A stretch of 63,081 nt of DNA, counting the filler, from Salisapilia sapeloensis CBS 127946 (Eukaryota > Protista > Oomycota), in the NCBI GenBank assembly GCA_023334545.1. It is 9 parts of 9 records of this genome, joined end to end, with 100 filler letters (N's around TTAATTAATTAA, not from the genome) between each part and the next. Parts side by side here need not be neighbours in the genome. Positions count along the whole stretch, not along the records: positions 7,260 to 14,017 come from JAADVB010000546.1; 8 more parts are not named here. One strand, 5' to 3'. This document shows, in pieces, positions 7,260 through 14,017 of this stretch (the first letter of the stretch is position 1; each line of letters opens with the position of its first letter). Below the pieces are notes generated by a model. It made no database searches and was not told the origin of the DNA. It saw only the letters and a list, made by a program, of their open reading frames with translations. A program made the translations under genes and the position numbers.

Positions 7260-7751
7260 GAGATGGAGAAGGTCGGCAAGCTCATGACGCGTCTGAACAG
7301 CTATGCGATTCAAACATATTTCCTCATGAAGGACGACAACGTGGTCCATCCAGAGGAGTTCAAGCCCAACAAGGTCACTGGTATCTTCTTCGACAACAAG
7401 TCAGACTACGCGACGTGGTTCTCTGCTGAAAAGTATGCCATCCACGGTATCCAGATGCTTCCGGTGTCAGCCGTCACGCCGTATGTGCGCACTGCACAGT
7501 TCGTCCGTGAGGAATGGGATCAAGTCCTTGCGAATGTGAACATCGTGGCCAGTCGTGATAAGACAAATCCGTGGCTCTCAATTCTGTACTTAAACTACGC
7601 TTCAATCAACCCGGATGCTGCTATAGACGTCTTAAAGGACGCTGCCATGGATGACGGCCTAACACGATCCTGGGCTCTTTACATGTCTCTGTCGTATAAG
7701 AATCAAGCTAGGCAGACATCACTGACAGACCTCGGATTGATCGGTCTTTAA
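7260..7751 (+). CDS. Endo-1,3-beta-glucanase, glycoside hydrolase family 81 (3' part)
   Basis: NKVTGIFFDNKSDYATWFSAEKYAIHGIQMLPVS and DDGLTRSWALY are GH81 C-terminal motifs. 5' end cut by the gap. Confidence 0.88.
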   Translation, partial: EMEKVGKLMTRLNSYAIQTYFLMKDDNVVHPEEFKPNKVTGIFFDNKSDYATWFSAEKYAIHGIQMLPVSAVTPYVRTAQFVREEWDQVLANVNIVASRDKTNPWLSILYLNYASINPDAAIDVLKDAAMDDGLTRSWALYMSLSYKNQARQTSLTDLGLIGL

Positions 7752-10289
7752 GACTCGAAACTGAATAAAAAAGAATTGTCCGTTCAAATGAAAGTTCTCC
7801 ATTCTTTTGCTCTTGTCTACGCTGCAATGCGTTGGGTGTATACTTTTGAAGAGGCGAGCAATTAAGGTAGCATTCGTGCTAGTTTGGTAATCAGTTGAAT
7901 CATTTTTTGTGACAAAGAATTATATTGAGTTAATAAGGTAATCAGTGGAATCAGTCATCCACTTGTCATGATCTCTGACTCTATGAGTCCCGAAACATTC
8001 TGCTCGAAGTGTAGATTACTGGTTAACGGTCCAAGCATTGCAACTTAGACGATGGTGCCTACAAGTCACAAGAAACGTCAACCTTATTCACCTCAAGTAA
8101 AACGAAACGCGATATACCAGAAACTTTCTTCATATTCAACTCCTACCGCAAAGAAGAAAACTACCAACTTAACGTCCTTAATGAAGTCCACGACAGTACT
8201 ACGACTTGATTTTAAATACCGCCGCTGATTTATGTGGCGTTGGAAGTACTTCGTCCACGTAAATTAATGATAAATCAATAGAGAAAATCCCCTATGCATG
8301 TTCTTTCCTCCAATATGCAAAATATATCACCTGGACATAAGTCAAGCCGCAATACAGCTTACATCATAAATTTAAAAAGTGAGAAGGAGAGCATGGCCTG
8401 CCAACTGCTAGGTGAAGACCAAGTGAAGGTGATGCTCGGCACCATCGTCTGTGGCATGGTTCGGATGCGTGCCTATTGTCGTATGGCGCTTACACATAAC
8501 CGACTCTAATGGAAAGCACATATTCGGGCATGCTAAACCGCACATGAAAACATTCAAAGATGTCTTCTTAGAGGTGTCGAAATCCCGCGGCATCTTCTTG
8601 ACCAAGTTGAAGGTATGAGTACCCAGGCATTGGCAATGACGTCAGAAGGAAACTCAATGCAGCAAGTGGGCAGTAACCGCGAAAACAATGAAAGGTAACT
8701 TAAAATATTTTATGGCCCTACTTTTCAATTAATTTCTGCATGGTCCTGACGACAGAGGGAGTATTGGCTCGCCAGATGCGAAGCATTCACAGACAAATGA
8801 CTGTGCGTTCGTAATTTTAGAGAAGCAGGTTACCGCAAAACTCCTCCACGCATCATTTGTGTCCGTGATGGTTGTCTGGATCCAAATCGAGTACCCGCCG
8901 ACTGAGAATTTGCCGTACAGCGAAGTTAAACTTTGTTTAATGAAGAATGTGCGCGTATGCATGGTACTACACCGATCCCAGCAAATGACAAAAGCTGTTC
9001 CGTAAGTTTTTTATCTTCTATAACTGATTTTTGTATTGTATAATTATTATTTTTGTACGTCTAGATTGAAAAAGAAAATGATAAATCGAATTATGAAAGT
9101 GAAAGGTACGCGTATATCCCATTCTACATATTCTTATGTTGTTTAAAGTATTTCAAAGTTCTAGCTCTCTATACGGGCGTGACAATTATACCATCCTAAT
9201 GATAGAAACGACATCTTGGGATGATCTCACGTTAATACTTGTATGTCAAGTATAAAATCAAGACACACGAAGTAGACGTTAAGTGTATGAAGACCAAGGT
9301 GGTAAAAGATCGTCTCAGCTCACATCCGGAGTCAAGTAGCTTTAAAGTTATTTGCAAGTTCCATGCGTCATTCCGAACTGACATCGACAGGAAATTGACG
9401 CTGTAGTCGACTTATCGACAAAAACTTATGTTCCACAGTAGACTTAGATAATTGTGCCACTAAGTCTAATCTATTTGTTTTCTCTTTAGCGTTACGAGTT
9501 TTTTGTCAAGAGTATGGAACGCTGTACGCTGGCGATTGTTTACTGTTACATATTACAATACCAACTATTGTAACAACTTCATTCTTGTAACTTCAACTAG
9601 TTGCTGCCGCCCGCTTTGCGAGTGGTTTAACATGTTAGGATGGACGAAGGAGCAAAGAGTATTTTATATTGTTGTGCTGCAGCAACTATATTGCATAGAA
9701 TTAAAGATGCGATCGAAAATCGAAATATAGACTTGTTTCCATCTTACATCATGCGTTCTGTAGGTCGTGTTCGCGCTAACTATCAATTTGGCCTAACTGA
9801 GACTCACATTTTGTAACTCCATTACCGATAATCGAATTATACGATTCTGTATTTGCTGAGAATAGCCGATTTTGATTTGCTACTTGCCCACGGAAACCTA
9901 GCGAAACACTTTAATTCAAAGTGCTTGCCTATCTAGGAGTACAGAAGCAAATGCTCGGTAATGTCAATGAACACGTCGCTTTATATTGCTAATACATTTC
10001 ACCTCTCGTGCTCCACCCTATGTTAAAATTGAGTTTTCAGTTGCCATGCTCACTATGGCGCGAGTTGTATAATATTTGCAACACATATGAGAGTCTCTTT
10101 CGGAACAAATGATGCCTACATCGATATACCCACTGGACATAATCTACCTGTTACGTCGATTTGGAAGAGAAGGATTCAAGAGGCTTGATACCGATAAAGC
10201 TTTCACCATGTATGCTCAATTTATATCTATTATTCCTTGCACGATTCCCGATTTTATGCTGAACGAACTTGGCCACAGTCTCTTCTTGT

Positions 10290-10860
10290 AGCCGTGACGT
10301 CTATATTACCACATACTGCCATTGAACTACCATGCAACCACGCCGTTCGGCTCAACTTCACCACACCACTGCTTCACTACGCCACATATATCTGCATCGC
10401 CACTACGCCTCCTACTCTACCATCGACGCCGTCACCTTCCATGATACCACTCCAGCAAAACACTACATCACGACCTTTAGACACACCTTCACACCCTCGA
10501 TGCTAAGAAACCCTCCACGCCACCATGCTGTCATGCCACCGCGCCTTGTGCACTACGAACCATACTTACTCGCTCAAAATTTATATTCCACCACTTCATT
10601 CTGCTATCTTACTACTGTGCCCCACTCAAATTTGCCATGCTATCGCTCAACTCTACAGCATCAATCATAAAACACCTCCTTATGTCAGTAGATCATTTCT
10701 ATTTCTATCCATTTGTCTACTTCAAAACATATTTACAATATGTCACACCCTACCTTCAAATTACCACGTAACTACTTTATTCTACAACGTTAATAGTGTC
10801 TTCACCTCCTCATGTACACCCACTATCATTACTTTACACGATTATCTACATACAAAACTT
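10290..10860 (+). repeat. Strand-skewed C/A-rich, G-poor low-complexity tract
   Basis: Runs of CACCAC/CTAC/CCAT; overlapping ORFs translate as H/T/P/Y-rich junk. Boundaries approximate. Confidence 0.7.
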
Positions 10861-13760
10861 ATATTAAAAATACCACAGACAAAAATTCTTTGTTACCCAT
10901 TTAAAAATTCTAAGTCAATAAAATGTAATGAAGACCTTTTAGCACGTCGATCTACAAGTCAATATAAATATAAAAAAAAATTTAACACAATCAATTGCAG
11001 TCCTGTTGAAAAAATACTAATACAAACCAACAAAAGTATTGCGTTCATTCCCATTTAGAATCTTAAAAAAATTGATTAAATACAAATCAGTAAAATAAAC
11101 TTATACTGAAAAAAATAAATGTAAGATTGCAAGAAACTATTGAGTACATCTAACACAACTGTAACTAGTTAAGAGCATAAAAACACTGTAAATTAAAATA
11201 CAATCACATACGTAGAAAGCAAAATTTTTTTTGAGTTTTATTTTTTTGAAAATAAAATTGTTTAATAATCAAAAAGATAACACAATATAATTTCTCTACA
11301 TATAAAATAAAAACAGCACATATCATACAAATTTAGTAAAACATTTTTAAAGAGCAATATTGTAAGTTAGATATTAAAAGTATAAAGAACATTTAAGTAA
11401 TACGTTTTGAACTTTAAAAAGATGTTTTTATGATACAACTGTGATTGTTCACGTATAACAAACAACACAGGATGGTAAAAAACCATAATCATTTTCAAAT
11501 TTATTGTAATGTGGAATATGTATGTTTATTTTAACATTATAAGATTGATTGTTTTTGCAAGCATTTTTAGAAGAAAGTTGAATATTTACAACCACTCATT
11601 ATAAAGATTGTTTATTTAACAATTATAGCGGTAGTTTTTAAAACAGCCTTACAAAATATATTCGAGATTCTTTGTAAGTACTGTAATCACATCATGATAT
11701 AATGTTAAAATTAAAAAAAAAAAAAGCAATTATATAAGTAAATAAAGTAGTTTAAAAAAAAATATCTTTAAAAAAATTAGAACAAATATATTAAAAAGCT
11801 TGTGTGAACAACGACTTTATGTAAATTATCTCTACACTTTTTTTAAAGAAAAATTAAAACACAAATAGTTTAAACATCAGTAGACCTTTACAAAATACAC
11901 ACTTCTTTGTATAATAGAACTGTTTATATGTTTTTAAAATTTTAATAAGCAACAAATTTTAATTTATAAATATAATAACCTTTTTAAAGTACCTATTTTT
12001 AAAATAGTATATTTGCAACATACCATTAAAACAATTTTAATATACACGTTGTAGTGTACACAAAGTGTTTTAACACACATAACACAAACCTTAACATATG
12101 AATTTTTTCTTTCTTTATTAAAATTGATGATAATAAAATTTTGTTATATATATAGACTAATAAGCTTCTTAAGTTGAAAAATTTTGGTTTTGTAAAAGTG
12201 TCATATACATCAACAGTAAATGTTTAGTTGGTATCAGCCCATCTGTAATGTCAAAAAAAAATTTCATAGTATAACAAGTAACTTGGATAAATCGATATTA
12301 CAAAGTACAAAGGGTATTGACTGGGCTAATTTAAACATTTTGATATATTTAACTTGATAATGTTCGTTGACTTTACCAACTTTTGCGTAATAGTAATATT
12401 ACTATCTGTATTTTGTTTTCCTTCTTTTTTAATAGAATAAGATTTATTAAATGATTTAAAATGACACAGTGCAGTTTAACGTACTTTTTTTATAAATTTA
12501 ATTGTATACTGTTTGTGTTTAAGACGCTTTTAATCAGTTAGTGCCGTTATATTTATTTTATATTAGAAAATAAAACAACATAAGCATTTTAAATATACAA
12601 ATTTATAAAAATCAAATAATGCAAATATGTAATTATTATTAAATCTAATTTTTTCATCGCTAGCTTTTATACATCTCTTTATTAATAATAGGGTACCCGT
12701 TGACAAGATATTAGACTAAAGTGATCGCTTACACTTCATAACAAAGTGTCTATTATAGTGTATTTATTGTTTCTCACAAAAATAACCATGTGCAAAATGA
12801 TATATATTATGTTGATTTTGTTCAGTTAAAAATATATTTTGTAAGAAGTTTTTCTTAAGAACTTAGCATAAGACGTTTCACATGCATATTAGTTACGGAA
12901 GTATTTTGTCTTCACCAAGTGCATGTTAATTTATATGACTGCTTTTAGTATATTTGTTACATGATATGAAATATTTAACCAGTTGTTGCCTATAATTGTA
13001 CTGTTTTAATTATTAATGTACAACAACAAGGTGCAACGTGCCTGACGTTGTAAGTCTAAATTTTATAGGAAGCTTTTTACGTCAAATTAAATAATCTGTT
13101 TACACATGACTAAACAAGAGTTTTAAATTCATTTACTAGAATGTTAGCTAAACAACAGATGCAAATGTAGTAGTAGTATGCTTTTTTTGTTATATGCAAA
13201 ATATTTTTTAGCATTTAAAAATTAAATCGACACTGAAACATGAACAACTTGTAAAAATGATCAAGTGTATCGCTACTTCGATATATAAAAGTTGACTGTT
13301 TATCTATTTTTTATACAATTCTTTGCTTTAATTCTTTACTCTATCAGCATAGGTGTCAGTTCCTTTAACTGTTTCCTTATTAGGTTGTTATTTGATGTAT
13401 GTAAAAATTTTGACCACAAGTTATGTCTTAACCTTTTAAGCATGAATTGTCTCGGATAATACACGTGTCATGTACATCATTCTAAACTGATCTACGTGAA
13501 TGTCTAAATTTTTTAGCTGTAGTTTTGTAATCGACTGATAGAGTTATGCATTTAATTTATGCTCTTGTATTTACTTTCTGTTCTGACGCAACTAGCAACA
13601 CGAGCTTTCGTATTACTTTCTCTGTTGGAGCCTATAAACAATAATGGTTAAACTACTTTCTACAATCATCGATTTAAGTAATTTGACTACAAATTTTGAA
13701 AATCGTCCAAAAGCTTGTTTTCTTTAGCAGCGATGATTAGTTCTTAACGCTATTTTTTGC
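10860..13760. other. Extremely AT-rich, ORF-less island (possible hypermutated relic)
   Basis: Hand counts give 43/240 G+C at 11701-11940 and 46/240 at 12421-12660. No ORF of 60 aa or more in any frame between 11058 and 13855. Long A and T runs. Boundaries approximate. Confidence 0.85.
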
Positions 13761-13769
13761 TACATGGTA

Positions 13770-14017
<248 letters not shown>

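Follow-up and report, generated by a model that had tools for sequence, protein, structure and literature searches.

A 2.9-kb AT-rich island lies between two gene-bearing flanks of a 6.8-kb genomic piece of the oomycete Salisapilia sapeloensis. Our preferred reading, held tentatively (probability about 0.4), is that the island is an unconstrained spacer eroded by mutation that is ordinary for this genome, being AT-biased and favouring dipyrimidines. Within the island C is retained preferentially after purines and G before pyrimidines. This context bias is genuine, though it amounts to no more than two- to three-fold. No coding, repeat or organelle signals were found in the island, and a transition model with a weak preference for a 5′ pyrimidine fits its composition. 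The window, i.e. the whole stretch of DNA analysed (63,081 nucleotides, filler included), joins nine parts of nine records of assembly GCA_023334545.1; the piece described here comes from JAADVB010000546.1, and all positions are counted along the window (Table 1).

Table 1. Features of the 6.8-kb piece, in window coordinates.
Feature	Position	Strand	Remarks
GH81 endo-1,3-beta-glucanase gene, 3′ end	7263..7751	+	Left flank; 50% GC, normal composition
40% GC DNA, 2.5 kb, no recognisable gene	7752..10259		GC 0.397
C-rich, G-poor block adjoining the island	10260..10829		C 34%, G 10%
AT-rich island	10830..13759		24.5% GC; no repeats or coding signal; C kept preferentially after purines
MYST-family acetyltransferase gene, start	13765..14017	+	Right flank; truncated by the end of the piece

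The piece starts within the GH81 coding sequence and ends inside the MYST gene, and a fragmented assembly is inferred from its being cut within genes at both ends. Both flanking genes are oomycete-like and lie on the same strand. The left-hand gene, whose stop codon is at 7749-7751, matches the Pfam family Glyco_hydro81C (PF17652, E = 1.2e-41, profile positions 210-349 of 349), and its closest relatives are oomycete GH81 fragments sharing 51-68% identity with it. The right-hand gene, with an ATG at 13765, matches MOZ_SAS (PF01853, E = 4.4e-14, profile positions 1-35) from approximately 13881; GT donor-like sites were read from the sequence at 13810 and approximately 13991. An earlier note on this DNA, prepared by reading the sequence alone, had named GH81 and MYST flanks, and the Pfam matches bear this out. 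The GH81 loci of Pythium insidiosum and Peronosclerospora sorghi have no MYST neighbour, which made synteny unusable, and a metagenome scan with the GH81 fragment returned no match, nor did exact look-ups of two ORFs.

Between the GH81 gene and the island there is little that can be recognised. The 63 stop-free pieces of at least 30 aa between 7740 and 10720 gave zero Pfam matches, a word search with the 90-aa open piece at 8733-9002 found no homologue, and neither a tRNA nor a credible Rfam match was found in the 40% GC DNA (ARAGORN, Rfam). The C-rich block that follows has a GC skew of -0.47 to -0.66 and all three of its plus frames are open. It has no family match in Pfam, and its ORF has no homologue by word search. 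Two intron-like stretches beside the MYST exons are also approximately 40% GC, as read by eye rather than counted with a tool.

The limits of the island were taken from a three-segment likelihood split of the piece, which gave boundaries close to the 10860-13760 proposed earlier and a GC content of 0.245, against 0.419 to the left and 0.496 to the right. The 18-19% GC first reported describes the core of the island, where 200-nt windows lie at 18-21% and the lowest value in any 240-nt window is 17.5% (at 11705), but not the island as a whole, for which the mean is that given in Table 1. On the right, GC climbs gradually ahead of the MYST exon (0.24, 0.29, 0.30, 0.36), and at the edge itself it jumps from 0.30 to 0.48 at 13760, where coding sequence begins. 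The left edge, at approximately 10830, is a step in GC and also in purine/pyrimidine skew, the C-rich block being pyrimidine-rich (-0.21 to -0.27) and the start of the island purine-rich (+0.13). Transitions cannot create a step of the latter kind, and the island is therefore a sequence entity separate from its left neighbour, which makes an insertion or an assembly join possible. Inside the island, AT skew switches sign near 12100-12300, the plus strand being A- and C-rich to the left and T-rich to the right. The relationship between AT skew and GC skew is non-significant (Spearman -0.29, p = 0.12, 29 windows at the 100-nt scale). Low-complexity runs are present in the island, among them an A13 run at 11714-11726.

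On the plus strand of the island, 230 of 364 C (63%) have a purine before them and 227 of 347 G (65%) have a pyrimidine after them. Pooling both strands gives 457 of 711 C preceded by a purine (64%; expectation 50%; z = 7.0-7.7), and none of 500 shuffles reached the observed value, even with shuffling in 20-nt blocks. A local-composition artefact arising from A+C-rich and G+T-rich patches was rejected, since a z of approximately 7 survives shuffling in blocks of 200 down to 20 nt. The depletion of YpC and GpR beyond composition, which had been proposed from sampled counts, thus holds in full counts, although the sampled values of 70-72% were somewhat high. Similarly, CC and GG are scarce relative to GC (55 against 58, where 2:1 is expected), a real shortfall that the sampled counts of 3 against 8 had overstated. 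As the earlier note had it, CpA is not depleted; it is enriched: 170 of the 364 C are followed by A (47%, against an A frequency of 38%), an odds ratio of 1.23. The symmetrised odds ratios are lowest for CC/GG (0.63) and GA/TC (0.74) and highest for GC (1.33) and AC/GT (1.27), with the remainder at 0.87 (CG), 1.12 (AA/TT), 0.81 (AT) and 0.89 (TA).

The proportion of pyrimidine sites occupied by C is 0.311 where the 5′ neighbour is a purine and 0.177 where it is a pyrimidine. When both neighbours are considered, the proportion falls from.344 (R_R) to.272 (R_Y),.197 (Y_R) and.160 (Y_Y), with an odds ratio of 2.0-2.1 for the 5′ neighbour and 1.3-1.4 for the 3′ neighbour. Among the TCN contexts, TCA (0.82) and TCT (0.78) are the least depleted and TCC the most. 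The bias is co-extensive with the island: in 300-nt windows, the fraction of C preceded by a purine is 0.56-0.75 within it; beyond its edges most windows lie at 0.44-0.58, and the fraction climbs locally to 0.57-0.63 at 9360-9960. The C-rich block beside the island is rich in YpC and is unaffected (CC 0.89). The 40% GC flank follows the same rule more faintly, with a P(C) of 0.325 in the Y_Y context against 0.39-0.43 elsewhere (p = 8e-5, 0.013), and this points to a genome-wide mutational tendency. No such bias was seen at two other oomycete loci (0.41-0.52); none of their windows is below 36% GC, however, and they therefore provide no proper standard against which to judge AT-rich oomycete DNA.

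C-to-T change on both strands was simulated from starting DNA of 40-50% GC, with k denoting the fold preference for a 5′ pyrimidine. A k of 2-3 reproduces all ten dinucleotide odds ratios. For example, the simulated ranges were 1.07-1.13 for AA, 1.14-1.25 for AC and 0.77-0.89 for AT (observed 1.12, 1.27 and 0.81), and 0.49-0.68 for CC, 0.70-0.82 for GA and 1.34-1.80 for GC (observed 0.63, 0.74 and 1.33). With k of at least 10, as for a strict YpC enzyme, 77-98% of C would be preceded by a purine and the GC odds ratio would be 2.4-3.4, against the observed 64% and 1.33. The idea that C-to-T change at YpC sites on both strands shaped the island therefore survives as a weak, two- to three-fold preference, whereas strict YpC specificity overshoots. 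A stationary composition or a weakly specific enzyme would be just as compatible with this fit.

The pattern of purines and pyrimidines (R/Y) is invariant under transitions, and this was the basis of the tests for relic coding sequence. R/Y period-3 power was 0.15 over the whole island, and across 24 windows its median was 0.35 and its highest value 2.5, amounting to no signal; as controls, the GH81 exon scored 5.3 and 13 oomycete coding windows had a median of 2.7, the test being moderately sensitive (46% of coding windows above 3.0). YRR (stop-class) codons numbered 107-125 per 966-967 codons in the six frames, which is within the surrogate range, and no frame was depleted. The 47 stop-free pieces of the island gave no Pfam match, the best E-value (0.037) being at chance level. 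With the R/Y period-3 and YRR-frame tests and the Pfam scans of the 47 island and 63 left-flank pieces all negative, a relic coding sequence was rejected, and the former coding origin envisaged in the earlier note was not upheld. Its statement that the island lacks ORFs of 60 aa or more is correct for start-to-stop ORFs wholly inside, but a 177-aa ORF from 10525, in the C-rich block, extends 200 nt past the left edge, and the minus strand has, at 12029-12223, a single stop-free stretch of 65 codons that lacks a start. The peptide that it offered as an example was located at 11264-11302 in plus frame 2.

An origin as a former mobile sequence, also envisaged earlier, found no support. Terminal direct or inverted repeats in the island did not rise above chance, no tandem or dispersed repeats were found within it, and hidden duplications in the 6.8-kb piece were at shuffle level by repeat finders and by a scan in the R/Y alphabet. 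A transposable-element relic is thus not supported, the 47 pieces also showing no transposase, RT or integrase homology. A NUMT or non-coding RNA was rejected: ARAGORN reported 0 genes, and hence no tRNA in the island, Rfam gave no rRNA and a single chance-level miRNA match outside the island, and Pfam gave no match to mitochondrial protein genes.

Under the preferred reading, the island would be a gene-free intergenic stretch just upstream of the MYST gene and free of constraint, and its source may be an older non-coding sequence that is now unrecognisable. Accumulated G:C-to-A:T change would have brought it to approximately 24% GC, C with a 5′ pyrimidine being lost perhaps two to three times faster than C after a purine, with a smaller added effect of a 3′ pyrimidine. 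Such a neighbour effect would be expected of ordinary spontaneous or damage-driven C-to-T mutation, possible sources being deamination or mis-bypass at dipyrimidine photoproducts, or the deamination of transiently single-stranded DNA. Selection holding the MYST exon would give the abrupt right edge at 13760. We infer that the starting GC was normal, that transitions were the agent and that mutation of the kind general to this genome, and not a dedicated enzyme, was responsible. A drift of unconstrained DNA to 24% leaves the singling-out of the island unexplained, as the non-coding DNA at 7752-10259 stays at approximately 40% GC.

A dedicated, YpC-preferring cytosine-deaminating defence, whether RIP-like or AID/APOBEC-like, acting on a repeated or foreign copy would be a more dramatic origin for the island, and we regard it as very unlikely. 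The depletion of TC and CC, the enrichment of AC and GC and the excess of TT/AA are what YpC-to-YpT change is expected to produce, the transition model matches the full dinucleotide profile, and the bias is confined to the island in windowed counts. RIP indices are nominally positive (TpA/ApT = 1.10, threshold 0.89; substrate index (CpA+TpG)/(ApC+GpT) = 0.96, threshold 1.03), but are unspecific in AT-rich DNA, and the enrichment of CpA means that this is not classical RIP. Moreover, the fitted preference is well short of the depletion predicted by k of at least 10, and the order of the TCN contexts, with TCC spared the least and the most spared being TCA and TCT, which APOBEC3A/B classically target, is unlike these enzymes. 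The neighbouring C-rich block, for all its YpC sites, is untouched, the 40% GC flank carries a weak version of the same rule, and there is neither a duplicate in the 6.8-kb piece, even in R/Y space, nor a transposon domain in the 47 pieces. The weak preference, the TCN order and the faint rule in the flank likewise speak against the genome defence suggested in the earlier note. The note knew of no established RIP-like process in oomycetes, and our literature searches likewise turned up no report of one. Similarly improbable is local hypermutation of the island, as a member of a wider set of such sequences, by a cytosine-deaminating process whose 5′-pyrimidine preference is loose, although the fit with k of 2-3 leaves room for a weakly specific enzyme. 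A functional chromosomal element is unlikely too. Here the short, non-repetitive GC trough would be a regional centromere, replication origin or matrix-attachment region, with its low GC selected or self-maintaining. A unique 2.9-kb sequence of 24.5% GC, set between genes amid DNA of 40-50% GC, suits this idea, and the sign change in AT skew matches the polarity of origins or divergent transcription units, although the coupling of the skews is non-significant at the 100-nt scale. Short, simple AT-rich centromeres are reported for the diatom P. tricornutum, also a stramenopile, and for P. falciparum (PMC7082073). However, the centromeres so far characterised in oomycetes, by CENP-A ChIP-seq in Phytophthora sojae and via Copia-like enrichment in Globisporangium and Peronospora, are long with abundant Copia-like elements, and those of P. 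sojae range from 115 kb to >270 kb and have normal GC (PMC7082073, PMC11139960). A chromosomal element alone would also leave the neighbour bias unexplained.

It is quite improbable that the island reflects a chimeric join, or DNA of an intrinsically AT-rich source (organelle, symbiont, host or virus) that was inserted between oomycete genes or placed there by mis-assembly. The truncation of both flanking genes by the ends of the piece and the double step at the left boundary are in keeping with such an event, low-complexity runs such as the A13 run could mislead an assembler, and oomycete mitochondrial DNA has a GC content of approximately 22%, similar to that of the island. Nevertheless, the island contains no tRNA, rRNA or organelle, viral or bacterial protein-family signal, the rise in GC on the right is gradual before the exon, and the two flanks are alike in being oomycete-like and on the same strand. 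It is highly unlikely that the island belongs to the MYST gene, as a long, AT-rich intron or as its 5′ leader, with N-terminal exons further upstream. MYST proteins usually carry a chromo domain or zinc finger, and position 1 of the MOZ_SAS profile is reached only approximately 120 nt past the island with no chromo or zinc-finger exon before it; the right half of the island is also T-rich on the plus strand. Yet none of the 63 left-flank pieces matches chromo, Tudor-knot or zf-MYST, the ATG at 13765 coincides exactly with the jump in GC, and the other intron-like stretches in the piece, read by eye, span a few tens of bases each and lack any AT-richness.

If mild dipyrimidine-biased C-to-T change is the organism's general neutral pattern, as the preferred reading of a worn-down spacer has it, the island offers a convenient record of that pattern and is in other respects ordinary. 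Were such islands to occur once per chromosome, they would be diatom-like, point-like centromeres in an oomycete lineage, in contrast to the long transposon-rich centromeres of Phytophthora. Should they instead be mutated copies of repeats, this would be evidence that oomycetes, in which no mutational genome defence is known, possess one. Loose 5′-pyrimidine hypermutation, if true, would represent the first RIP-like defence beyond the fungi.

The island resembles several known systems in part. It shares with fungal RIP and AT-rich isochores (Neurospora, Leptosphaeria maculans) the form of an AT-rich, gene-free, non-repetitive-looking block beside genes of normal GC, and a composition, including both RIP indices, compatible with massive G:C-to-A:T transitions. 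Fungal RIP, however, acts on duplicated sequence and targets mainly CpA, such that CpA/TpG is depleted and TpA enriched, whereas the island has CA/TG at 1.23 and TA at 0.89, follows a two- to three-fold 5′-pyrimidine rule and has no detectable duplicate or transposon relic in the piece. With the AID/APOBEC deaminases, which act on single-stranded DNA and prefer TC or CC, it shares the depletion of TC and CC relative to AC and GC and the excess of TT/AA. These enzymes have a strong, fixed 5′ preference and nearly exhaust their targets at high mutation load; the effect in the island runs in the right direction but is far weaker. As regards strand-coordinated runs, the left half is A- and C-rich and the right half T-rich, but the skew correlation given above is non-significant. 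UV-type mutagenesis consists of C>T change in dipyrimidine contexts (PMC12887450). The likeness here is that C is best kept between purines (R_R 0.344) and worst in pyrimidine runs (Y_Y 0.160), that the 5′ neighbour has the strongest effect and that TCC is the most depleted trinucleotide; it is a likeness of end-state composition only, and UV-type change would leave the confinement to 2.9 kb unexplained. Finally, whereas known oomycete centromeres are long, Copia-like-rich and, in P. sojae, of normal GC, the regional centromeres of diatoms and Plasmodium are kilobase-scale, unique, low-GC sequences between genes, and the island has a GC trough of just this kind.

A three-segment likelihood split of one of the joined parts (7260-14017, JAADVB010000546.1) placed an AT-rich island essentially where the earlier note had located it, with a GC content of 0.245 against 0.419 to its left and 0.496 to its right. 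GC content lies at 17.5-21% in the core (mean 24.5%), no start-to-stop ORF of at least 60 aa is found wholly within the island, and it holds 21 A or T runs of at least six bases compared with 4 in the left non-coding stretch. The longest homopolymer of the island is a run of 13 A (11714-11726).

Features of the part containing the AT-rich island, in window coordinates
Feature	Position	Details
GH81 endo-1,3-beta-glucanase, last exon	7263-7751	PF17652, E = 1e-41; part starts inside the exon
Non-coding flank	7752-10259	2.5 kb, 40% GC, downstream of GH81 stop
C-rich, G-poor block	10260-10829	C 34%, G 10%; GC skew down to -0.66; directly left of island
AT-rich island	10830-13759	2.9 kb; likelihood segmentation
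MYST acetyltransferase, first exons		MOZ_SAS domain from ~13881, E = 4e-14; part ends within gene

The GH81 and MYST genes are separated by 6 kb in three parts, without a recognisable gene. Among the relatives visible to the search, those nearest to the GH81 fragment are oomycete proteins (51-68% identity), which marks the source as oomycete-like but distant from every sequenced species that the search covered. A metagenome scan with the fragment as query gave no match, and exact look-ups of two ORFs returned no record. Synteny with this region is absent at two other oomycete GH81 loci (Pythium insidiosum and Peronosclerospora sorghi), which contain no windows below 36% GC and so offer no AT-rich baseline. 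The MYST exons were searched one by one rather than as a joined model. A candidate start (ATG 13765) lies ~120 nt before the MOZ_SAS domain, with GT donor-like sites at 13810 and ~13991, and the 6 kb upstream yielded no exon for a chromo, Tudor-knot or zf-MYST domain; the gene may be an N-terminally short form, a copy without its 5′ part, or one with far-upstream exons. Several open pieces of 55-93 aa occur in the flank, some ending at GT donor-like sites (e.g. 8433-8615 and 8733-9002). None gave a Pfam match or a homologue in word searches, and the flank may represent an orphan gene that is spliced, or no more than spacer. It also carries a 17-nt direct repeat (7886-7902 and 7937-7953, 16/17 identical, 51 nt apart), which lies ~135 nt beyond the GH81 stop.

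Across the whole island, with both strands pooled, 457 of 711 C residues (64%) are preceded by a purine, where 50% would be expected (z = 7.0-7.7). None of 500 shuffles reached this excess, even when shuffling was confined to 20-nt blocks, which rules out patchy local composition as its cause. The bias described in the earlier note is therefore real, and co-extensive with the island, if slightly overstated by hand samples of 70-72%; the deficit of CC+GG relative to GC is also present but had been exaggerated (3 vs 8 by hand, 55 vs 58 in full counts). Symmetrised odds ratios were 0.63 for CC/GG, 0.74 for TC/GA, 1.27 for AC/GT and 1.33 for GC, the remainder being CA/TG 1.23, CG 0.87, AA/TT 1.12, AT 0.81 and TA 0.89. 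Trinucleotides in excess were ACA (1.70), GCA (1.58) and GCT (1.40), and the most depleted were TCC (0.40) and CCG (0.47). By purine/pyrimidine (R/Y) class, which transitions do not alter, C still occupies 31.1% of the island's pyrimidine positions that follow a purine and 17.7% of those that follow a pyrimidine, the equivalent figures for the flank being 41.5% and 37.9%. When both neighbours are considered (5′_3′), C retention in the island declines from R_R (0.344) through R_Y (0.272) and Y_R (0.197) to Y_Y (0.160), with an odds ratio of ~2.0-2.1 for the 5′ neighbour (p = 1e-7 to 1e-10) and ~1.3-1.4 for the 3′ neighbour. A faint version of this rule exists in the flanking ordinary non-coding DNA (Y_Y 0.325 vs 0.39-0.43, p = 8e-5), suggesting that the bias is not unique to the island and is a general property of mutation or composition in this genome.

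C-to-T change was simulated on both strands until GC content reached 24.5%; the initial sequences were surrogates modelled on either the 40% GC flank or the 50% GC coding ends. When YpC changes 2-3 times as fast as RpC, the simulation yields both the 64% figure and the whole dinucleotide profile (AT deficit, AA/TT excess, GC = 1.3). Rate ratios of at least 10 overshoot: 77-98% of C would be preceded by a purine, the odds ratios of CC and TC would be 0.4-0.5 or less, and that of GC would be 2.4-3.4. The YpC-favouring transition erosion put forward earlier is thus quantitatively tenable as a weak neighbour effect, but not as the near-saturating footprint of a context-specific enzyme. The compositional observation itself is real and statistically solid. 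We tentatively suggest, with a probability of roughly 0.4, that the island is unconstrained intergenic DNA which would have been worn down by the ordinary AT-biased, dipyrimidine-favouring mutation of the genome. This reading does not by itself account for the contrast between 24% GC in the island and 40% in the adjacent non-coding DNA, which keeps the finding mildly interesting.

Transitions leave the R/Y class of a base unchanged, so the R/Y string of the island represents its state before any C-to-T or G-to-A erosion. A period-3 R/Y signal is a property of coding DNA. Its normalised power is 0.15 for the island overall (24 windows, median 0.35, maximum 2.5), 5.3 for the GH81 exon (reached by 2 of 500 shuffles) and a median of 2.7 for thirteen 600-nt coding windows from two other oomycete loci. 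Sensitivity is moderate for any single window, with 46% of coding control windows exceeding 3.0; nevertheless, values are uniformly low over 2.9 kb, and the island is unlikely to be mostly ex-coding in origin. Every stop codon is a YRR codon, and genuine reading frames contain few of these: GH81 has 12 among 164 codons in its true frame vs 14-26 in the other five. The island has 107-125 per 966-967 codons in each of six frames, and Markov surrogates contain YRR-free runs as long as its longest (65 codons). Transitions would not hide a duplicated segment in R/Y space; there, the top-scoring matches in direct and inverted orientation (100, 200 and 400 nt) equalled those of shuffled controls. Moreover, none of 47 stop-free island pieces of at least 28 aa matched Pfam, no tandem repeats or repeat families rose above chance, and no tRNA or Rfam match was found in the island. 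Taken together, these negative R/Y, Pfam, repeat, tRNA and Rfam tests provide no evidence for a coding, transposon or organelle origin. The erased coding sequence envisaged in the earlier note finds no period-3 R/Y signal, YRR-poor frame or Pfam match in its favour, and the erased mobile element no Pfam match, repeats or R/Y-space duplicates.

At the right edge GC content climbs slowly through 0.24, 0.29, 0.30 and 0.36. A step up to 0.48 follows at 13760, with the ATG five bases further on; the island gives way at the point where selection on coding sequence sets in. That the island instead belongs to the MYST gene, as an intron or leader, is very improbable. At the left edge the drop in GC coincides with a plus-strand switch from pyrimidine-rich to purine-rich sequence (R/Y skew -0.27 to +0.13). 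Such a switch is beyond the reach of transitions, so island and C-rich block are separate sequence entities, and ~10830 is a junction of two unrelated sequences, by insertion, old rearrangement or conceivably the assembler. An artefact or foreign DNA is an improbable source of the island. The C-rich block is open in each of its three plus-strand frames (89-183 aa), with no Pfam match, homologue or detectable tandem repeat. It is full of YpC yet without depletion (CC 0.89, TC 0.85), so a YpC-directed process did not spill into it. A functional GC trough, such as a centromere or origin, is unlikely. The plus strand of the island is A- and C-rich in its left half and T-rich in its right, AT skew turning from positive to negative near 12100-12300, and such polarity occurs at replication origins or divergent transcription units. 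However, its amplitude is modest and its coupling with GC skew is not significant at the 100-nt scale (p = 0.12). Oomycete centromeres characterised to date are long, with an abundance of Copia-like elements, those of Phytophthora sojae, identified by CENP-A ChIP-seq, being of normal GC content (PMC7082073), and those of Globisporangium ultimum and Peronospora effusa were placed mainly via Copia-like enrichment (PMC11139960). Diatom and Plasmodium centromeres, unlike those of oomycetes, are short, simple and AT-rich (PMC7082073).

Targeted hypermutation is a decidedly doubtful explanation. As the earlier note had it, CpA is not depleted; it is enriched (CA/TG 1.23), which separates the island from classical RIP. 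Textbook RIP indices are nominally positive by the usual thresholds (TpA/ApT 1.10, substrate index 0.96) because AC/GT is more enriched even than CA/TG, and these indices are unspecific in AT-rich DNA. Full-text literature searches found neither RIP-like nor APOBEC-like mutation described for oomycetes, and no AT-rich isochores either. The proposed deaminase or RIP-like defence was supported by no test run, and its strict form is contradicted by the weak context preference. TCA and TCT, the classic targets of APOBEC3A/B, are the least depleted of the TCN contexts in the island, unlike the pattern those enzymes leave. The graded survival of C, best when isolated between purines, is at least as close to dipyrimidine-context C>T mutagenesis of the UV type (PMC12887450) as it is to deaminase editing.
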